Part shown: positions 2,125-47,900 of the stretch, one piece after another
How positions within the stretch are numbered: the first letter of the stretch is position 1
Layout of the letters: each line of letters begins with the position of its first letter
DNA from: Macrostomum hystrix
Lineage: Eukaryota > Animalia > Platyhelminthes
Length of the DNA stretch: 64,000 nucleotides
Reading direction: 5' to 3'
Assembly (NCBI GenBank): GCA_950097015.1
Contig: CATNEN010000002.1
Coordinates: 1,364,001 to 1,428,000, forward strand
Translations under genes and position numbers: made by a program
The notes under the pieces: model-generated
Seen by the model: the letters and a program-made list of their open reading frames with translations, nothing else
Told to the model about the DNA's origin: nothing
Database searches by the model: none

Positions 2125-4190
2125 ACTGAAGAACTCACTGCATCACAAAATCACACCAAAGAACTCACTGAATCACGGAATCACACTAACGAACACACTG
2201 AATCACACCAACGAACTCACTGAATCACACCAACGAACTCACTGAATCACACCAACGAACTCACTGAATCACACCAACGAACTCACTGAATCACACCAAC
2301 GAACTCACTGAATCACACCAACGAACACACTGAATCACGGAATCACACTAACGAACAAACTGAATCACACCAACGAACTCACTGAATCACACCAACGAAC
2401 TCACGGAATCACACCAACGAACTCACGGAATCACACCAACGAACTTACTGAATCACACCAACGAACACACTGAATCACGGAATCACACTAACGAACACAC
2501 TGAATCACACTAAGGAACTCACTAATCACACTAAGGAACTCACTGCATCACAAAATCACACCAAAGAACTCACTGAATCACGGAATCACACTAACGAACA
2601 AACTGAATCACACCAACGAACTCACGGAATCACACCAACGAACTCACTGAATCACACCAACGAACTCACTGAATCACACCAACGAACTTACTGAATCACA
2701 CCAACGAACACACTGAATCACGGAATCACACTAACGAACACACTGAATCACACTAAGGAACTCACTAATCACACTAAGGAACTCACTGAATCACACTAAG
2801 GAACTCACTGAATCACACTAAGGAACTCACTGAATCACACTAAGGAACTCACTGAATCACACTATGGAACTCACTAAATCACACTAAGGAACTCACTAAA
2901 TCACACTAAGGAACTCACTGAATCACACTAAGGAACTCACTGAATCACACTAAGGAACTCACTGAATCACACAAAGGAACTCACTGAATCACACAAAGGA
3001 ACTCACTGAATCACACTAAGGAACTCCCTGAATCACACCAACGAACACACTGAATCACACCAACGAACTCACTGAATCACACCAACGAACTCACTGAATC
3101 ACACCAACGAACACACTGAATCACACTAAGGAACTCACTGAATCACACCAATGAACACACTGAATCACACCAACGAACTCACTGAATCACACCAACGAAC
3201 TCACTGAATCACACCAACGAACTCACTGAATCACACTAAGGAACTCACTGAATCACACCAATGAACACACTGAATCACACCAAAGAACTCACTGAATCAC
3301 AAAATCACACTAAAGAACTCACTGAATCACATAATCACACCAAAGAACTCACTGAATCACAAAATCACACTAAAGAACTCACTGAATCACAAAATCACAC
3401 TAAAGAACTCACTGAATCACAAAATCACACTAAAGAACTCACTGAATCACAAAATCACACCAAAGAACTCACTGAATCACAAAATCACACTAAAGAACTC
3501 ACTGAATCACATAATCACACCAAAGAACTCACTGAATCACAAAAGCACACTAAAGAACTCACTGAATCACATAATCACACTAAAGAACTCACTGAATCAC
3601 ATAATCATATTAAGAACTCACTGAATCACATAATCATAATAAGAACTCACTGAATCACAAAATCACACCAAAGAACTCACTGAATCACAAAATCACACCA
3701 AAGAACTCACTGAATCACTAAAACACACCAAAGAACTCACTGAATCACAAAATCACACCAAAGAACTCACTGAATCACAAAATCACACTAAAGAACTCAC
3801 TGAATCACATAATCACACCAAAGAACTCACTGAATCACAAAATCACACTAAAGAACTCACTGAATCACATAATCACACTAAAGAACTCACTGAATCACAT
3901 AATCATATTAAGAACTCACTGAATCACATAATCATAATAAGAACTCACTGAATCACAAAATCACACCAAAGAACTCACTGAATCACAAAATCACACCAAA
4001 GAACTCACTGAATCACTAAAACACACCAAAGAACTCACTGAATCACAAAATCACACCAAAGAACTCACTGAATCACAAAATCACACTAAAGAACTCACTG
4101 AATCACAAAATCACACCAAAGAACTCACTGAATCACAAAATCACACTAAAAAACTCACTGAATCACTAAAACACACTAAAGAACTCAAAA
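2125..4190. repeat. Compound minisatellite, 22-bp units then 30-bp units
   Basis: ACGAACTCACTGAATCACACCA (22 bp) to ~3260, then AAAGAACTCACTGAATCACAAAATCACACT (30 bp). Confidence 0.95.
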
Positions 4191-33924: not shown

Positions 33925-34555
33925 GCAACCTCAAACCCTCAATGTATATTTCTTGTTCCTCACCCTCAGAACCTCCAACCCTCAATGTACATTTCTTGTT
34001 CCTCACCCCCAGAACCTCAAACCCTCAATGTACATTCCTTGTTCCTCACCCTCAGAACCTCAAACCCTCAATGTACATTTCTTGTTCCTCACCCTCAGAA
34101 CCTCAAACCCTCAATGTACATTCCTTGTTCCTCACCCTCAGAACCTCAAACCCTCAATGTACATTCCTTGTTCCTCACCCTCAGAACCTCCAACCCTCAA
34201 TGTACATTCCTTGTTCCTCACCCTCAGAACCTCCAACCCTCAATGTACATTCCTTGTTCCTCACCCTCAGAACCTCAAACCCTCAATGTACATTCCTTGT
34301 TCCTCACCCTCAGAACCTCCAACCCTCAATGTACATTCCTTGTTCCTCACCCTCAGAACCTCCAACCCTCAATGTACATTCCTTGTTCCTCACCCTCAGA
34401 ACCTCAAACCCTCAATGTACATTCCTTGTTCCTCACCCTCAGAACCTCAAACCCTCAATGTACATTCCTTGTTCCTCACCCTCAGAACCTCCAACCCTCA
34501 ATGTACATTCCTTGTTCCTCACCCTCAGAACCTCAAACCCTCAATGTACATTACC
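33925..34555. repeat. 43-bp minisatellite
   Basis: Unit AACCCTCAATGTACATTCCTTGTTCCTCACCCTCAGAACCTCA, ~14 copies. Confidence 0.95.
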
Positions 34556-34914: not shown

Positions 34915-35345
34915 TATGTCCTGAATGTACCATCGCCCATACTTATCGCATCAGGCCTCCCCAATCCCCTGAATATACACACGTTCATACTTATCCCTAA
35001 ATGTACACTCGTTCATACTTATCCCATATGGCATCCCCAATCCCCTGAATGTACGCTCGCCCATAATTAACGCATCAGGCCTTCCCAATCCCCTGAATGT
35101 ACGCTCGCCCATAATTAACGCATCAGGCCTTCCCAATCCCCTGAATGTACACTCGCCCATACTTATCGCATCAGGCCTCCCCAATCCCCTGAATGTACGC
35201 TCGCCCATAATTAACGCATCAGGCCTTCCCAATCCCCTGAATGTACGCTCGCCCATAATTATCGCATCAGGCCTTCCCAATCCCCTGAATGTACACTCGC
35301 CCATACTTATCCCATCAGGCCTCCCTAATCCCCTGACTGTACATT
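34915..35345. repeat. 48-bp minisatellite
   Basis: Unit TCCCCTGAATGTACGCTCGCCCATAATTAACGCATCAGGCCTTCCCAA, ~8 copies. Confidence 0.92.
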
Positions 35346-35467
35346 GTAAACAAATAGACAGCATTTTTATATTATCAAATCAAATAGAGTTTAATATTAT
35401 AACATTGAATATATATATTTAATATTAATCATATACTTTTTTCAGCACGCAAGATCGTTGCTCTGCA

Positions 35468-36664
35468 ATGAATAGTTGGTGCAAGTCTGATGCACTCTTC
35501 GATATTGTTGATTCCTCGGCCTGCTTAGAGCAGCAGAAACTGGAGACATCAGAAGACCTTGCTGCTATTGCTTCTATAGAGGTTTGTGGCGTTGTACTTC
35601 GCCATTTTCAAAGCTGGGGTACTTCAGATGTAGGTTAGATAGTATCCATGAGTACATAGTATATTTGGAGTTGAATATTGCATCTAGATTTAATCAAATG
35701 AGGATACATCAGTGGGTAGGTGTAATAAGGTGAGATTATATCAATACGTAGATGTAATCAGGTGAGGATAGATCATTGATTATATTAATTAGACGTAATC
35801 AGGCGAGAATTTATTAATGAGTATATTGAGTAGGTGTAATCAAGTGAGGATTTACCGGAGAGTAGATTGAGTAGATGTAATCAGGTGAGAATAGATTAAT
35901 ACGTAGATTAAGTAGATGTAATCAGGTGAGAATAGATGAGTTGACTTGCATTGCAGGCTCCAGAGGCTGCCAGTGCAGCTACAGAGCCTCGTTCTCTCTC
36001 TCGTCCAGCCAATCAGCGAGAGGAACTGGCATCGAGAGCTTCGTCGGCTAGACGACCGCGTAACGCCAACAGGAGCCGTAAAAGCTCAGACTCGATCGAC
36101 GTCGTCTACCTGTGCCTGGCTAAGAATGATAACGTCGAGGAAGACGTGGAAACTGCGGATCAGGTCCAGCTGATGATCTCTCTGCATTGCCGTTCAGGCA
36201 GCCTACACCAGTTATCGTTTAGTCTGTCCAACTTGTTTGACATCAGCGCCAAAGGCAGCCAACTGGAGCTGCAGCTACCGCAGGCGAAATCATCCGCTAT
36301 CGCTGATTTCAGCGTGGCCTGCGTCGAATGTCGCCTAGAATTCAATCGCGCCGATGCGGCTGTTGCTCATTTTCGCCGGCCAAACCTCTCTGGCAGTTCT
36401 CATCAACGCTACAAAGTGTTACTACTGTGCGGCTATGCCAATTGTAGGCTACTGTTTACTAACTATTCAGCTAGGACTTTGCACAGGCTGCGAGTGCACG
36501 GCTCAGCGACTGGCCTAGCTACCCAGTCTAGAGGATTGACCACTTTCTTAGCTGGACCAAATGATCGACTCTATCATCTCTATGATAGGCAGCTGGTTGA
36601 CTGCGGCCCGTTCGTTGTGACTGGCAAACGAATTTACGAATTGCCCGAACCTGTTGTTGTCTAA
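35468..36664 (+). CDS. Uncharacterised protein with two C2H2-like zinc fingers (exon 1 35468-35581 or -35629; exon 2 35957-36664)
   Basis: Acceptor ttttttcag 22 nt before the ATG; two phase-0 donor options; acceptor cattgcag at 35956. Motifs CVECRLEF..AAVAHF and CGYANCRLLF....RTLHRLRVH. Confidence 0.6.
35690..35940. repeat. Degenerate ~41-bp repeat in the zinc-finger gene intron
   Basis: Recurrent GATGTAATCAGGTGAG..TAGATT. Confidence 0.7.
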
Positions 36665-37248
36665 ACCAGCGGAGTGTGCCACATTATGTAGTGAATTTGT
36701 TGACTTTGCACTACTTATAGACTCGGGTCTAGTAGGATAGTATGAGTTTTTATGCTTGCGTTGTTTTTTTAATAACGATTTAATAGAAGATTAACGTTCC
36801 TGTTTTACAAATTATATTCGCAGCATTTCTTTCCTAAAAAGTTGTGGTAATAGATGGCATTTTAAAAGACTTATTTTATGCTTCATAACCCTTTTCGAAA
36901 AACCTTTCTTTTCGTCAAGATAATAGCCGCCGATTGTGTGCGTGCATTTTCATATTCCTGCTGTACTACTTGCTTAGGTTTTCTAGTAAGTACTCAGTAG
37001 GAGTTTTGAGTTCTTTTTATCGTTTTAGCTTGAAATGTTTAGAGATCGCTAACCAGAGAGAACCTACTATTTTTTTAAGAAATATATTTGATATAATCTA
37101 ATAAGTTAATATAAAATGTGTCACTTGTTGGTTTTTTAGCTTTGACTGATCCTAATATTCTAGAATTCCTGGAACAAACTAGGAATATAGGACAACATAG
37201 TACTCTTGAGACTTGAAATTTATAGACTGCACACACTACTCACCTCAG

Positions 37249-40200
37249 CAACTCAAGCGGACCATAGACACTGTCCTGGAGGCTGACAGTGTTGAGTACC
37301 GGCCTTCTAAGGGCAATGACCCAAGTCTGCTGGTGTGCGCCTGCTACAAGTTTGACGAGTCTGTAAGACATCTATTATCTTCACGTGTAGGATATTGTGT
37401 CGCGTACGGATACAGGGAAATAGCATTGGGATAAAGCAAAATGACATTGGAATGAAGGGTATGACATTGCAATGAGGGGTATGACATTAGAATGAGGGGT
37501 ATGACATTAGAATGAGGGGTATGACATTGCAATGAAGGGTATGACATTGCAATGAAGGGTATGACATTAGAATGAGGGGTATGACATTGCAATGAAGGGT
37601 ATGACATTGCAATGAGGGGTATGACATTAGAATGAGGGGTATGACATTGCAATGAAGGGTATGACATTGCAATGAGGGGTATGACATTAGAATGAGGGGT
37701 ATGACATTGCAATGAAGGGTGTGACATTGCAATGAGGGGTATGACATTAGAATGAGGGGTATGACATTGCAATGAAGGGTATGACATTAGAATGAAGGGT
37801 ATGACATTAGAATGAGGTGTATGACATTGCAATGAAGGGTATGACATTGCAATGAAGGGTATGACATTAGAATGAGGGGTATGGCATTAGAATGAAGGGT
37901 ATGACATAGCAATGAAGGGTATGACATTAGAATGAGGGGTATGACATTGCAATGAAGGGTATGACATTAGAATGAAGGGTATGACATTGCAATGAAGGGT
38001 ATGACATTGCAATGAAGGGTATGACATTGCAATGAAGGGTATGACATTGCAATGAAGGGTATGACATTGCAATGAAGGGTATGACATTTCAATGAAGGGT
38101 ATGACATTAGAATGAAGGGTATGACATTGCAATGAAAGGTATGACATTGCAATGAAGGGTATGACATTGCAATGAAGGGTATGACATTGGAATGAAGGGT
38201 ATGACATTGCAATGAAGGGTATGACATTGCAATGAAGGGTATGACATTAGAATGAGGGGTATGGCATTAGAATGAAGGGTATGACATTGCAATGAAGGGT
38301 ATGACATTGCAATGAGGGGTATGACATTGCAATGAAGGGTATGACATTAGAATGAAGGGTATGACATTGCAATGAAGGGTATGACATTGCAATGAAGGGT
38401 ATGACATTGCAATGAAGGGTATGACATTAGAATGAAGGGTATGACATTGCAATGAAGGGTATGACATTGCAATGAAGGGTATGACATTGCAATGAAGGGT
38501 ATGACATTGCAATGAAGGGTATGACATTGGAATGAAGGGTATGACATTGCAATGAAGGGTATGACATTGCAATGAAGGGTATGACATTAGAATCAAGGGT
38601 ATGACATTGCAATGAAGGGTATGACATTGCAATGAAGGGTATGACATTAGAATGAAGGGTATGACATTGCAATGAAAGGTATGACATTGCAATGAAGGGT
38701 ATGACATTGCAATGAAGGGTATGACATTGGAATGAAGGGTATGACATTGCAATGAAGGGTATGACATTGCAATGAAGGGTATGACATTAGAATGAGGGGT
38801 ATGGCATTAGAATGAAGGGTATGACATTGCAATGAAGGGTATGACATTGCAATGAGGGGTATGACATTGCAATGAAGGGTATGACATTAGAATGAAGGGT
38901 ATGACATTGCAATGAAGGGTATGACATTGCAATGAAGGGTATGACATTGCAATGAAGGGTATGACATTAGAATGAAGGGTATGACATTGCAATGAAGGGT
39001 ATGACATTGCAATGAAGGGTATGACATTGCAATGAAGGGTATGACATTGCAATGAAGGGTATGACATTGGAATGAAGGGTATGACATTGCAATGAAGGGT
39101 ATGACATTGCAATGAAGGGTATGACATTAGAATCAAGGGTATGACATTGCAATGAAGGGTATGACATCGCAATAAAGGGTATGACATTAGAATGAAGGGT
39201 ATGACATTGCAATGAAGGGTATGACATTGCAATGAAGGGTATGGCATTAGAATGAAGGGTATGACATTGCAATGAAGGGTATGGCATTAGAATGAAGGGT
39301 ATGACATTGCAATGAGGGGTATGACATTGCAATGAAGGGTATGAAATCGCACGCGCTTGAATCAGAAATTATTCGCTAAAGTGCGCAGCGTGAAAATGGT
39401 GTTTCTATTGTTAGCCAGCCAATCGTTCGATTTGAAAAAATTTTTAGTCCAAAACTCGAATCGGCCGGCTGCACCTCGTGGTGGACGGTGAGAACCAGCC
39501 TGAGGTCACAAGCTGCGAAAGCTTTTTTGGTGGCGTTTTGGACCTCAGCTGGTCTGGAAAGTCTAGCCAGCTGTGGACAGCGAACTCCGATGGCAGCCTA
39601 GCCCAGTACGATGTCGAAAAAGATAAACTCAAGCTAAACACTTTAGTTCCATCGCCTGTTGCACCTTCAGCACAAACTAACACAAGCGCAGGCTGCGTTG
39701 CTCTGTCAGTCAACTGCTTTGCGGACAGGTGAGTCCGAGAGCTGAGTACACTGAATCTTCAACTGTAATCCCTGAATCTTCAACTGTAATCCCTGAATCT
39801 TCAACTGTAATCCCTGAATCTTCAACTGTAATCCCTGAATCTTCAACTGTAATCCCTGAATCTTCAACTGTAATCCCTGAATCTTCAACTGTAATCCCTG
39901 AATCTTCAACTGTAATCCCTGAATCTTCAACTGTAATCCCTGAATCTTCAACTGTAATCCCTGAATCTTCAACTGTAATGCCTGAATCTTCAACTGTAAT
40001 GCCTGAATCTTCAACTGTAATCCCTTAATCTTCAACTGTAATACCTTAATCTTCAACTGTAATCCCTGAATCTTCAACTGTAATCCCTGAATCTTCAACT
40101 GTAATCCCTGAATCTTCACATGTGATCCCTGAATCTTCCAGTGTGAGCCCTGAATCTCCAGTGTGATCCCTGAATCTTCAGTGTGAGCCCTGAATCTTCA

Positions 40201-41445
40201 GTGTGAGCCCTGAATCTTCAGTGTGACAGTCTTCTAAATACCTAATATCCTTGCCTTTTACGTTTACCTATGGCAGACTGGCTGCAAGCTACTCCAACGG
40301 TATGTGCGCTCTGGTCGACTCAGCTGTGTTGCAGAAGATGAAGAAGAAGAATTTGCATAAGTTCTTAAGCGGTAGATTCTGGTGCGCACACGCAATAGAA
40401 GCCTGGGTCTGCCAGCCTAGTCGATGGTCCGATCAAATGGCGCTTAGCGGCGGCGATGACTGCCTTTTGAAGCTGTGGGATCGGCGGAGGCAACATGCCA
40501 GCCACTCTCTAAGGTGAGCTTTTGCCGAGCCAGTCACGTGACTCGAATGCAGCGTTAATGAGCTGTTTACAATGTGCCTGTGTTTTTTTCATAACTAACT
40601 ATTCTAAAACTATTCCAGGCACGACGCGGGTGTTACCATAGTTACTGAACATCCTAAAATGTGTAATATATTTCTGTCCGGAAGGTAAATTAAAATATCT
40701 ACCTGACCAGCCCTAACCTACCCAATCTACCCTAACCTACCCTATCCAACAGAACCTACCCAATTTACCCTAACCTACCCAATCTACCCTAACCTACCAA
40801 ATCTACCCTAACCTACCAAATCTACCCTAACCTACCCAATCTACCCTAACCTACCCAATCTACCCTAACCTACCCAATCTACCCTAACCTACCAAATCTA
40901 CCATAACCGCAGCTACGACGAACTCATCCGTGTGTGGGACACTCGCCGCCTGTCCCATCCTATCCATTCGATGAACATCGGCGGCGGTGTTTGGCGTCTT
41001 AAATGGTCGGCCTGCTGCAAGCGACTGCTCTGCGCCGCTATGTACAACGGCTTCAAGGTGCTAGATTTCACGGAATGTGAGTCTCGTTTGCTGTATTTGC
41101 TATATTCTACTCATTAATCTTCACCCTACTCATCAATCTGCACCCTACTCATCAGTCAGTCACGTGGGTTTATGTCTCCGCCTTCCAGTCAGCGGCCTGA
41201 CCTTACTAGAAGAGTTCTGGGCCCCACACAACAGCATCGCTTATGGCGCAGACTGGATCCCGATTCCTGTGGAAACCGTAACCGAAGTCAAAACCGAAGT
41301 CAAAACCGAATGCGAAGCCGAAGCCGAACATGAACCCGAACCCGAAATCGAACCCGAAACCGATGTTGATTATCTGGTTGCCACCTGCTCGTTTTACGAT
41401 CACAAGCTGTGCACGTGGCGTACTGATCTTAACTATAACCCTTGA
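37249..41445 (+). CDS. DPH7: WD40 diphthamide biosynthesis protein DPH7/WDR85 (exons 37249-37362, 39448-39728, 40277-40513, 40619-40684, 40913-41076, 41189-41445; ~372 aa, no genomic ATG)
   Basis: DTVLEADSVEY, LLVCACY, RIGRLHL, GGVLDLSW, AHAIEAW, LSGGDDCLLKLWD, HDAGVT, SGSYDELIRVWDTR, GGGVWRLKW, AAMYNGF, HNSIAYGADW, LVATCSFYDH. Exon phases are consistent (1119 nt in total). Confidence 0.92.
37440..39345. repeat. 20-bp minisatellite in DPH7 intron 1
   Basis: Unit ATGACATTGCAATGAAGGGT, ~95 copies, with the internal palindrome CATTGCAATG. Confidence 0.97.
39750..40226. repeat. 21-bp minisatellite (20-bp variant at the 3' end) in DPH7 intron 2
   Basis: CTGAATCTTCAACTGTAATCC, then CTGAATCTTCAGTGTGAGCC. 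Confidence 0.96.
40710..40905. repeat. 19-bp minisatellite in DPH7 intron 4
   Basis: Unit TAACCTACCCAATCTACCC. Confidence 0.9.
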
Positions 41446-41992: not shown

Positions 41993-44900
41993 CTAGTTCT
42001 CCCGTCTTGACCTCTCGAAGTACATGAAATCCTGCGTGGGGATTGAAAAAAAAGACAAACGTACTTTTAGAATAAAATATTTAAGCTTTAGCTGTATTCC
42101 AAAGGGCTAGGAAATCTCATCACATTAGCCTTCGAGATAATCGTTAGGAAATCCCTAAAATGAATTATCTCAATAGTCTTTGGGAAATCCCTAAAAATGT
42201 ATCACCAGGACAATCTTTGAAAAATCCCTGAAAATGAATCATCAGGACAATCTTTAGGAAATCCCTAAAAGTGAATCATCAGGACAATCTTTAGGAAATC
42301 AGTAAAAGTGAATCATCACGACAATCTTTAGGAAATCCCTAAAAATAAATCATCAGGACAATCTTTAGGAAATCCCTAAAAGTGAATCATCAGGACAATC
42401 TTTAGGAAATCAGTAAAAGTGAATCATCACGACAATCTTTAGGAAATCCCTAAAAATAAATCATCAGGACAATCTTTAGGAAATCCCTAAAAGTGAATCA
42501 TCAGGACAATCTTTAGGAAATCAGTAAAAATGAATCATCACGACAATCTTTAGGAAATCCCTAAAAATGTATCATCAGGACAATCATTAGGAAATCCCTA
42601 AAAGTGAATCATCAGGACAATCTTTAGGAAATCCCTAAAAGTGAATCATCAGGACAATCTTTAGGAAATCCCTAAAAATGTATCATCAGGACAATCTTTA
42701 GGAAATCGCTAAAAATGAATCATCAGGACAATCTTTAGGAAATCCCTAAAAATGAATCATCAGGACAATCTTTAGGAAATCCCTAAAAATGTATCATCAG
42801 GACAATCTTTAGGAAATGCCTAAAAATGAATCATCAGGACAATCTTTAGGAAATCCCTAAAAATGTATCATCAGGACAATCTTTAGGAAATCCGTAAAAA
42901 TGAATCATCAGGACAATCTTTAGGAAATCCCTAAAAATGTAACGTCAGGATAATCCTTGGAAAATCCCTAAAAGTGAATCATCTGGATAATATTTGGGAA
43001 ATCCTCAAAAATGAATCATCTGGATAATTTTAAGGAAATCCCTTACCATGGGAAAATTGTGTGAAAAATCATTAAAAATTGCCATCAGGAAAATGTTGGG
43101 GAATTCCCAGCGCTCTTTCAAACAGGGATTGACTTTCGGAGCTCCGGTCGCTTTATCCAACGTGGATATTCTCAAATAATTCCCATTTCTCTAGCAGAGC
43201 AATCAGTTTCATGGTGCGAGCGTACTTATAGTAAAAATGCATTTTTACTCACAATCAGGAAGCAGGCTCCAATGACGGTTGCCTTGATGTCCACGTGCAG
43301 ATCCATCGGAAATGTGATGCCGAAATTGTCAGCGTCCGTGAAATACTCCTGCAAGAGGTTGGACCACTTCTTGGACACCCGACCAATCTCGTGGTCTCCG
43401 TCCTTCGTGAACAGCTGCAGTGAGCGATTCGAGTTGAGTGAGGATTACACTGTATTCTATTATGATTCAGGCAGCTGGACGTCGAGGATTATTGTAAATT
43501 GGGGTCAAAAAGTACGTGCGATATCTGATTTAGCTATAAGATATCATCTCGATCAGATAGTTGGGATCTTATTGGGGATCAGATGGGTGTTATTTCGGAT
43601 GGGGATTAGATTTGTAGGATCTTGGATGGGATTTAGTTGACTGGGATCTCGGTTGGGGATCAGATGGGTCGGATTTTATTGGGGATCAGATGGGTATTTC
43701 GCATGGGGATTAGATGGGTGGGATCTCGGATGGGATTTAGTTGACTGGGATCTCAGATGGGGATCAGATGGGTGGGATCTCGGTTGGGGATCAGATGGGT
43801 GGGATCTCAGATGGGGATCAGATGGGTGAGATCTCATCTCAGATGCCTCACCACAAACGGGATGTCGTCTCCAGGGCAGTAGCAGCGGCAGTAGCACGGA
43901 CCCCTTATGAGCAGAACAGTGTTGCCCTGGCTATCCTTAATTAAGTATTTAGCCGAGCAGCCGTCGTACACCTGCTTCACCTGACCGACCACTCGACCTG
44001 GCGGAGCCTCCACCGTGACCTTGTCCAGGCAGCACTTTGAGCAGGAGAAGCACTGGCCGTAGCACATGCACTTGTAGGGCCGGCTGATGTGGATGACCTC
44101 TCGGTTTGTGTTGTCCAACAACGACATCTCGAATTTCCGCTGGGCGCCGCAACACTGACGCTGGAATGTACTGGAGTCTGCGATGTGGGGGAGTGAGGAT
44201 GAGACAGGGTGAGACTGAGACTTGGTGAGATTAACACACGGTGAAACTGAGACTGGGTGAGATTGACACAGGGTGAGACTGAGACAGGGTGAGACTGAGA
44301 CTGGGTGTAATTGACACAGGGTGAGACTGTGAGACTGAGTCAAGGTGAGATTGAGTCAAGGTGAGACTGAGTCAAGCTGAGATTGAGTCAAGGTGAGACT
44401 GAGTCAAGCTGAGATTGAGTCAAGGTGAGACTGAGTCAAGCTGCGACTGAGTCAAGCTGAGATTGAGTCAAGGTGAGACTGAGTCAAGCTGAGATTGAGT
44501 CAGGGTGAGACTGAGTCAAGCTGAGATTGAGTCAAGGTGAGACTGAGTCAAGCTGAGATTGAGTCAAGGTGAGACTGAGTCAAGCTGCGACTGAGTCAAG
44601 CTGAGATTGAGTCAAGGTGAGACTGAGTCAAGCTGAGATTGAGTCAAGGTGAGACTGAGACGGGGTGATACTGAGACGGTGCGATACAAACGGGGAGAGA
44701 CGCAGTTAAGGTGGGACTGACACCATTTAGGCGCCAAGTGGGCGCGCGATCATTTAGTCGTGTTAGCTGTAGGCCCTGAGTTATATCGTAGTGTGCGTGG
44801 AGTTGCGAGCGATTAATGTACATCTGCACCCATCGGCCGCACGTTGCATGTTCATCACCAAATATCAAATATAATCGATTGCTCAGAGCCTACTTCGCTT

Positions 44901-47900
44901 TAGGCTTTTTCGTCTACACAAATCATCTCTCGGCTCAGCACTCCTTACAGTGGCGTCGCAAGCCGCCTACCGCGCGGTAAAAAAAATGATAGCCAACTTT
45001 CTCTCACTGCCCCCGCCTGAGCCATTCGCAATATCAGCAGACCCACACAAAGCGGGCAAGCGCTGGAGTCAATGGGCGTCTCGTTTCGAAGACTTCATTG
45101 ATGCATCAGGCATCACCAACGAGAAGCAAAGATGCAAGCTACTGAGCTACACAGCTGGCAAGGAAATCGCCGACATCATCCGTGAAAACGCCGACCTGAC
45201 AGCGAAAGCACAGGCCGGCGAACTCACCCTCTCGCATACGCTTGACGCTCTAAAGTTTCACTTTAATGCTCGAAAAAACGTAGTCTTCGCTAGATACCTA
45301 GATACCTAGATACCAGTTCCGCCTCTGCACACAGGCAGCTGGAGAATCTATTGACACATGGTACGCCAGATTGCGCACAGCTGCAGAGCCGTGTGAGTTC
45401 GAGAATCTCAAAGACTCCCTCATCAGGGACCATCTTGTGGCAACTTGCTCATCCGACAAGCTGCGCAGGCGGCTGCTCCAGGAAGCGAACATCAGCCTTG
45501 ACGAGGCGCTATGGAAGGCTAGGGCGTTTGAGGCAGCCGATGAACAGGCCACCGAGATGGAGAAGTCGGAGACGCATGTGGCGAGCGTTGCCCACAGCGA
45601 TAAGGTGAAACCTGACAGAAGAGGCGCGACTCTGACGAGCAGCAGGTCCGGCGATCAGAAGCAGCTCACGTGTTACCGCTGCAGCGAGAAAGGCCACGCC
45701 ACCTGTGACGCAGCCAAAGGTAAAATCTGCCGCAACTGCGGCAAACCCAACCATCTCGCTTTGGCCTGCCGCCAGCCTTGACAGATGCACTACAACCGGA
45801 CCCAGCAGCAGAGAATCAGCACTAATGCAGTCTTCAGTTCTGCTGACGGCTCCACGGAGGAAGATGTGTTTGCTCTGTACGACGGCGGCGACTACCCAGC
45901 CGACGTCTCGCTGTCCGTACAGGTGGCAAATCAACAACTGCCCATGATGGTCGATAGCGGAGCCAGCTGTAGTATCATGAGTCTCAAAACCTTCAGGACT
46001 CTTAATCTACCGGACCTTCGTCCCACAAGAACAGAAGTCCGCGCCTACGAGGTACCGACACCTCTAAAGATTGCAGGGGTCGCCGAACTCCACATCAAAG
46101 TTGGAGCAGCCAAGACTACCGCGACATTTCACATCATGGACGGCGACGGCCTGACAATTCTGGGACGCCAGCCTGCATTCAAACTTGGAGTGCTGAAGAT
46201 CCAGAGGCCACAGATCTCCGACGCGCAGGAAATTAGCGCAGTCTCTGACACGCCGTCATCGCAGTCAAACGATCCTCAACTCGACGCAATTCTTCACCGG
46301 CACAAAAGGGCATTCAACGGCATCGGCTGCATCAAGGGCGTAGAGGTCAAAGTCCAGCTATCCGAAAATGCCATTCCGGTATGCCAGGCGCCTTCCCGGG
46401 TAGCTGCTCACCTCAAAGAAGCCGTAGTTAACGAACTCCGGGCACTAGAGAAGCAGGACATTATTGAGGCCGTCAAAGGACCAAGCGCCTGGGTATCCCG
46501 TATGGTAGTAGTGCCCAAGACCGATGGGGGCGTCAGAATCTGCCAGGATCTCCGCGACCTCAACGCTATCGTTATACCGGAGAAACAACAGATCACCACG
46601 CTAGAAGAGATCACGGAGGAGATGGCCAACGCTAAAATTTTCAGTGAACTAGACATCCGCAAGGCGTTCTACCAGATTCCAGTTCACGAAGACAGCCGCC
46701 ATTACTTCACCTTTAGCACGCCTCTCGGACTAATGCGACTTAAAAGACTTAGCATGGGGTTCACGAATGCCTCGGAGATTTTGCAACGGATCATGCTGGG
46801 CATCCTCAGCGATATTGAAGGCGTCCGGTGGGCGCACGATGACGTGGTGATCTACGCATCTGATTTAAAGCAACACCATAAGAGACTGGACGCGTGCCTT
46901 CAGCGCCTGCGTGAGTACGGCATCACCCTCAACAGGGACAAGTGCAGGTTCTCCCGACCGTCATTCGAGTTTCTCGGCATGCGCCTGACTGCTCGGTGCA
47001 TGGAGCCAGCTGCTGAGAAAATTGAGGCCATGCAGAGCTTTCGGCAACCTGCAAACGTTTCCGACGTCCGCTCATTCCTCGGCACCGCGAACTTCTTGTC
47101 AAAATTCGTCCCAAACTTCGCTCACTTCGCCGGGCCCCTCCGTCAATTGACAAAGAAGGGCCAGGTCTGGGAGTGGACGGATAAGCACACTGCGGCATTC
47201 GAAAGCATTAAAAAAGCAATAGGCGCCGCGGAAACGCTCGCCTTCTTCGACCGCAGGCGGCAAACCGAGCTCATAGTAGACGCCTCCCCGGTCGGCCTGG
47301 GCGCCATCCTCACGCAGAGGCAGCCGGACGGCAGCAGCAGACCCGTGGCTTACGCCAGCAGAGCCCTTTCAGCAGTGGAACAGCGGTACGCGCAGATAGA
47401 GCGAGAAGCTCTGGCCATCAAATTCGGGTGCTTGAAGTTTGAACACTACCTACCCGGAGACCCAGGCTTCACTGTAGTAAGAGACCACCGACCACTCGTG
47501 CCGCTGTTCAAGCCTGGCTTTCGTCCACCGCCACGAATCGAACGGATGGCATTGCGCATCCAGCAACTTCGCTTCGATCTGATTTACCGACCCGGGCCGA
47601 CCAATCCAGCCGACCTGCTAAGCCGGCAGCCACTGCCAGAACCAAGGAGGAACGTTGGTGAAGAACTTGACACCGCCTTCATCAACGCCGTGTCGGCCGG
47701 AGCTGTGCCAAAGGGCTTCAGCCCCGCTCAAGTGCGGGAAGCGTCGCGCACCGAAAGCGGCATCCAGGCGGCGCTAAGCGCCATCCGAACCGGTTAATGG
47801 AATATCCGCGACCCGGCCCAGCGCTCCTGCAAGACCGTCAGCAACGAGCTCTCAGAGAGTGATGGCGTCCTGCTAAGGGGCGACCTCATCGTCATCCCGA

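Follow-up and report, generated by a model that had tools for sequence, protein, structure and literature searches.

The DPH7 gene of Macrostomum hystrix has no genomic start codon, and it very probably takes one from a spliced leader that ends in AUG and is joined at position 37249 of the window (the whole 64,000-nucleotide stretch of DNA that we analyzed, whose coordinates are used below unless another locus is named). We put the probability that DPH7 needs the leader to obtain its initiator codon at about 0.87.

Exon 1 of DPH7 opens at 37249 in phase 0 with the letters QLKRTIDTVLEADSVEY..., directly behind an acceptor reading ...ctcacctcAG (AG at 37247-48), and GTAAGA follows directly 3' of its end at 37362. 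Sequence and translation place a TGA at 37207-37209 in the same frame as exon 1; this stop lies 42 nt 5' of 37249 and closes the frame upstream of the exon. The 13 sense codons between the TGA and the acceptor (DLKFIDCTHYSPQ) include no ATG, and there is no in-frame ATG between the TGA and the conserved DT...ADSVE N-terminus. The sole in-frame ATG of the intergenic stretch, at 36742, is on the far side of the TGA. Exons 1 and 2 contain no Met codon, and it is only in exon 3, around residue 142 of the 373, that the genome offers a first in-frame ATG. Given the TGA at 37207 and the Met-free exons 1 and 2, no genomic AUG is able to yield the conserved N-terminus. The initial annotation had claimed that DPH7 lacks a genomic start codon and has the TGA at 37207 in frame, which sequence and translation bear out; its phase-0 acceptor at 37247-37248, opening an exon at 37249, is seen both in the sequence and in a transcript contig junction. 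The coding sequence totals 1119 nt over six exons, or 372 codons and a stop, where the junctions of exons 2-6 rest on GT-AG sites, the reading frame, and a contiguous match to the Macrostomum lignano protein (Table 1).

Table 1. Features of the DPH7 locus and the gene upstream of it, in window coordinates.
Feature	Position	Strand	Evidence or description
AG trans-splice acceptor of the upstream zinc-finger-like gene	35444..35445	+	Loose end GCGAAGACTCAATTTATTGCAT before 35445 in X4
Upstream zinc-finger-like gene	35446..37083	+	GT..AG joint in X2 and X4; X4 contig to 37083; weak C2H2 match
Tandem array, intron of the zinc-finger-like gene	35748-35937		41 bp x4.6
Stretch missing from mature RNA: outron, or intercistronic spacer if operon	37084..37248	+	Depth 0 over 37100-37239 in X4 and X5
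In-frame TGA closing the upstream frame	37207..37209	+	Sequence, translation
AG trans-splice acceptor of DPH7 (ctcacctcAG)	37247..37248	+	Leader letters directly before 37248 in X4 and X5
First coding exon of DPH7 (38 codons; begins and ends in phase 0), DT...ADSVE motif, no ATG	37249..37362	+	Translation; contigs; sequence behind 37362 equals 39448-39477
Tandem array, DPH7 intron 1	37441-39344		20 bp x95
DPH7 exon 2	39448..39728	+	Contig junction with exon 1; 47% identity to M. lignano residues 41-147
Tandem array, DPH7 intron	39751-40220		21 bp x22.5
DPH7 exon 3, first genomic in-frame ATG	40277..40513	+	57% identity to M. lignano residues 149-211; boundaries inferred from GT-AG sites and reading frame
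DPH7 exon 4	40619..40684	+	62% identity to M. lignano residues 222-242
Tandem array, DPH7 intron	40711-40908		19 bp x10
DPH7 exon 5 (YDE..WDTR, GGGVWRLKW)	40913..41076	+	875 relatives; 77% identity to M. lignano residues 244-296
Tandem array, DPH7 intron	41107-41154		19 bp x2.5
DPH7 exon 6, TGA stop at 41443-45, acidic insert from hexanucleotide repeat	41189..41445	+	Matches M. lignano residues 299-345

DPH7, also known as WDR85 and in yeast as RRT2/YBR246W, is the methylated diphthine methylhydrolase; the activity of the family is the demethylation of methylated diphthine on eEF2. Judged by its sequence, the gene described here is DPH7. An exhaustive search with 54 aa of exon 5 returned 875 relatives at E<=1e-3, many of which also match the other five exons. 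Those with names, from snail, wasp, fungus, and M. lignano, are called methylated diphthine methylhydrolase, diphthine methyltransferase or diphthamide biosynthesis protein 7, and these names confirm the identity assigned in the initial annotation; named DPH7 homologues match all six exons. Pfam searches with the separate exons gave propeller matches, all sub-threshold, and exon pieces compared with the PDB matched WD40 repeats. Naming the family through exon 3, by PDB sequence search and the ESM Atlas, yielded generic WD40 matches only and was dropped.

Features of the DPH7 family that recur in this gene are the DT...ADSVE motif at the N-terminus, the blocks YDE..WD.R / GGGVWR.KW and ATCSFYDH, and putative WD40 propeller pieces; unlike the family, the gene is without a genomic start codon. 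Its exon 6 also has a species-specific acidic repeat insert that is missing from the M. lignano protein. A hexanucleotide coding repeat at 41272-41363 (GAAACC/GAAGCC-like) gives rise to this insert of roughly 30 or more residues, which is rich in Glu, Pro, and Thr and sits between the YGADW and ATCSFYDH blocks, where M. lignano DPH7 has a short linker only.

Our RNA evidence consists of assembled transcript contigs from public runs, placed on 35350-37440; this stretch adjoins the 1.9-kb tandem array of intron 1, and the array was kept out. In runs X4 and X5, which are two samples of one 2020 study, contigs at least 99% identical to the window cover 37248-37362, and 21 letters, CGAAGACTCAATTTATTGCAT, stand immediately 5' of 37248 in them. 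Adding the G at 37248 reproduces the 3' end of the Macrostomum spliced leader as published (35 nt, ending TTGCATG; compared with PMC8629364). A search of the window for the leader letters found no match, and the spliced-leader RNA gene is not in the window. Behind 37362, the X4 and X5 contigs continue with letters equal to 39448-39477 in exon 2, and they therefore represent spliced mRNA; contig depth in both runs is zero across 37100-37239, with both flanks covered.

Since the G at 37248 fits both the last G of the leader and the G of the acceptor, the leader is in truth joined in frame at 37249, as leader-AUG|CAA. The mRNA accordingly reads AUG CAA CUC AAG CGG ACC AUA GAC ACU, or MQLKRTIDT, and the leader AUG is in frame with the conserved DPH7 open reading frame with no stop between. 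Because the published leader has no other AUG, this is also the first AUG of the DPH7 mRNA. The contigs uphold the proposal, made from the letters of the genome, that an AUG-ended spliced leader completes DPH7 in frame at 37249, as well as the supposition that the leader of this organism ends in AUG (the contig ends read ...TTGCAT, then the G at 37248).

Only 21-22 leader letters are visible, as would be expected of a de Bruijn contig for a sequence common to thousands of transcripts. As a consistency check only, the 1358 nt of the X5 contig can be accounted for by 22 letters of leader, a coding sequence of 1119 nt, and a 3' UTR of ~217 nt, which implies an end ~36 nt after the AATAAA at 41621-26. 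On the same 35350-37440 stretch, X2 contigs cover the upstream gene only, and X1 contigs cover nothing, though ~22% of the words sampled from the wider stretch occurred in X1. The DPH7 acceptor, CCTCAG, is an incomplete match to the enriched trans-splice motif [T/C]TNCAG.

The contigs speak as well to the alternative raised in the initial annotation, in which a cis-spliced upstream exon gives the ATG; exon 1 of the zinc-finger-like gene (ATG at 35468, donor at 35581) could for instance be joined to 37249, creating a fusion N-terminus. Donor 35581 and acceptor 37248 are both in phase 0, such that a cis joint would keep the frame, and flatworm acceptors are reportedly common to cis- and trans-splicing (PMC12582326). 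In the contigs, however, donor 35581 is joined only to 35957 (X2 and X4), no contig runs from 35581 to 37249, and the leader is present on both of the contigs extending to 37248. The contigs on 35350-37440, which as assemblies may drop rare isoforms and cannot give the share of molecules that bear the leader, showed no cis junction of any kind into 37249. The fusion would also put 38 unrelated residues ahead of a motif found at residues 5-58 (median 11) in orthologues, and exon 1 of M. lignano is equally ATG-less. The splice from 35581 to 37249 is thus not borne out, and we regard a start codon from a cis-spliced exon as highly unlikely. The initial annotation had suggested looking for the leader at 37249 versus a junction from 35581 or use of the AG at 37225; of these, the contigs show only the leader at 37249. 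At the alternative AG (37224-25), the leader would be out of frame and meet a stop after 13 codons, and no contig uses it.

The nearest relative of this DPH7 is that of M. lignano, with 41-77% identity per exon. The shared 3' end of the leader and the synteny of three genes with M. lignano mark the animal as a macrostomid, and an identity of no more than 77% in the best-conserved exon sets it apart from M. lignano itself. The GenBank protein, PAA87540.1, is annotated as partial and starts RLIDKFDTGLEADS (RLIDKFDT) without a Met, and the UniProt fragment of M. lignano DPH7 reads through the acceptor into the non-coding stretch. At the M. lignano locus, NIVC01000226.1 (L001), an AG at 3999-4000 precedes exon 1, which begins at 4001 in phase 0; an in-frame TAA lies at 3971, 30 nt upstream of the exon, and there is no ATG between. 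An orthologue with the same missing ATG, which the initial annotation had proposed as a check, is therefore at hand, and because the layout is the same in both species, the dependence of DPH7 on the leader would be conserved in the genus. The sequences 5' of the two acceptors have little in common beyond ACTG...CTCAG. Once the leader Met is counted, residue 8 is the first of the DT...ADSVE motif in M. hystrix and M. lignano alike; across 53 full-length orthologues with an initial Met, the motif begins between residues 5 and 58 (median 11), in agreement with the expectation that the leader AUG would give DPH7 its usual N-terminal length. Synteny with M. lignano extends over all six exons and the zinc-finger-like gene that precedes them.

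These data argue that the ribosome would start at the leader AUG, for it is the first AUG and the only one yielding the conserved DPH7 N-terminus, conservation extends over the 141 residues that precede the first genomic AUG, and there is published flatworm precedent for a leader AUG as initiator. The context of this AUG, with U at -3 and C at +4, is not a strong Kozak context, and some leaky scanning is consequently possible. The weak context would also suit a model in which the leader is added and translation starts elsewhere, at a near-cognate codon or at the genomic AUG at about residue 142 (giving a truncated protein), with the match in frame arising by chance. Chance alone puts one acceptor in three in frame, and ~28% of S. 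mansoni trans-spliced mRNAs are in frame (PMC9851317). Against this model, the 141 residues before Met142 are 47-48% identical to M. lignano and conserved in orthologues across eukaryotes as well, which indicates that they are translated. In addition, both the phase and the position of the motif at residue 8 are equal in two divergent species despite differing sequence upstream of the acceptor, and the leader AUG comes first in the mRNA. We judge a start at another codon to be unlikely, and favor initiation at the leader AUG.

A further explanation is an artefact of assembly or annotation, such that the true ATG exon is missing or misplaced, or the gene is a decaying pseudogene. The region is full of tandem arrays and hard to assemble. 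Nevertheless, the mRNA contigs run from the leader straight into 37249 with no letters between, all six DPH7 exons are open and conserved, and the independent M. lignano assembly has the same structure; an artefact of either kind seems to us extremely improbable.

A tandem array is present in four out of five DPH7 introns and in the intron of the zinc-finger-like gene, a different, unrelated one in each (Table 1). Further arrays flank the two genes, at 34000-34552, 34995-35342, and 42139-43043. In M. lignano, intron 1 of DPH7 is ~10.4 kb long, and an array is found in the intergenic stretch too. Downstream of DPH7, L001 has a scramblase gene on the other strand; a scramblase-like gene or open reading frame, recognized by eye, occupies the - strand at 43200-44350 of the window and is syntenic with it. 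Beyond it, on the + strand at 44950-47800, lies a retrotransposon-like gag/pol open reading frame with protease and reverse-transcriptase motifs.

The zinc-finger-like gene upstream of DPH7 is composed of exon 1 (35446-35581), an intron (35582-35956), and exon 2, which begins at 35957 and contains the stop at 36662-64; its 3' UTR is seen up to at least 37083. Its identity with the gene that precedes DPH7 in M. lignano is 42%. This gene has an ATG of its own at 35468, and when the leader is joined to it, the leader AUG is followed by HARSLLCNE and a stop, making a 9-codon upstream open reading frame. Within 35444-35476, this short frame overlaps the ATG at 35468 out of frame. A single leader AUG may therefore play opposite roles in two neighboring genes, opening an upstream open reading frame in the zinc-finger-like gene and serving as the initiator in DPH7.

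Operons in M. lignano have been defined as adjacent same-strand trans-spliced genes with a repeat-adjusted distance under 1 kb (PMC8629364). Here, the zinc-finger-like gene and DPH7 are on the same strand, both carry the leader, and the distance from stop to acceptor is 584 nt (<1 kb). The order and strand of the two genes are kept between the species (window 37084-37248 and L001 2910-4000). Order and strand kept in two species, with both genes trans-spliced here, fit a conserved two-gene operon, and DPH7 is probably the second gene of such a unit, behind the zinc-finger-like gene. Contigs follow the upstream transcript to 37083, compared with the DPH7 acceptor at 37248; no assembled contig spans 37084-37247, and precursor RNA was not seen among the contigs. 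A scan of the intergenic stretch for bacterial-type promoters and terminators was disregarded, as it is not meaningful for a eukaryote.

In the mechanism that we propose, the DPH7 pre-mRNA would present its first coding exon, 37249-37362, with an AG acceptor and without a start codon. At 37249 the spliceosome would attach the spliced leader, ~35 nt long with AUG at its 3' end, and this trans-splicing would remove the upstream stretch containing the in-frame TGA. The leader AUG, first and in frame, would then direct synthesis of M-QLKR-TIDTVLEADSVEY..., a putative WD40 protein of 373 residues with the predicted N-terminal peptide (M)QLKRTIDTVLEADSVEYRPSK. Without trans-splicing, no full-length DPH7 would be made.

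Provision of the initiator by a leader AUG has been known in flatworms since 2006, and DPH7 is a well-supported new example. In the schistosome work of that year, Cheng and colleagues are said to have tested translation from the leader AUG by transfection. More than 40 S. mansoni cDNAs need the leader AUG (Cheng, Cohen, Ndegwa and Davis 2006, J Biol Chem 281:733, as described in PMC9851317), and open reading frames that take their initiator from it are termed slORFs (PMC9851317). A leader AUG has been reported as initiator for Echinococcus too (PMC3510090), and all reported flatworm leaders end in ATG (PMC12582326). The DPH7 mRNA resembles these flatworm mRNAs in having an AUG-ended leader at an AG acceptor directly before a conserved ATG-less open reading frame, in frame. 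It differs from the schistosome and tapeworm cases in that the host is a free-living macrostomid, the gene is DPH7, and the start at the AUG is one that we infer.

The M. lignano spliced leader is 35 nt long and ends ...GCGAAGACTCAATTTATTGCATG (PMC8629364); M. cliftonense and M. hystrix have it in highly conserved form, and a role as start codon is considered likely for its final ATG (PMC10468722). Over its last 22 letters, the leader on DPH7 is identical to the published Macrostomum leader. Macrostomum trans-splicing favors conserved genes and has been described genome-wide, as set out in the available parts of three papers (PMC8629364, PMC5730564, PMC10468722); these parts include the remark on the final ATG and no list of leader-dependent genes.

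Gene finders that require an ATG call such genes partial, as in the GenBank entry for the M. lignano orthologue, or invent a wrong start. As a consequence, the model of a conserved single-copy gene comes out wrong, which can be remedied by adding the leader AUG at mapped trans-splice sites. What the DPH7 case contributes to the known mechanism is a second species in which the arrangement is conserved, together with two contrasting neighbors inside one probable operon. It offers a clean two-species case of an enzyme of an essential pathway whose translation could not start without trans-splicing. More tentatively, the dependence of DPH7 on the leader AUG may have become fixed in the genus long ago, with phase and N-terminal length unchanged between proteins that are only ~50% identical. 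It would be set in a conserved two-gene operon with the zinc-finger-like gene, where the leader AUG would be the initiator of DPH7 and would open the 9-codon upstream open reading frame of its neighbor. Were this broader and rather doubtful picture correct, trans-splicing would be an obligatory, and possibly regulatory, gate for an enzyme of the diphthamide pathway.
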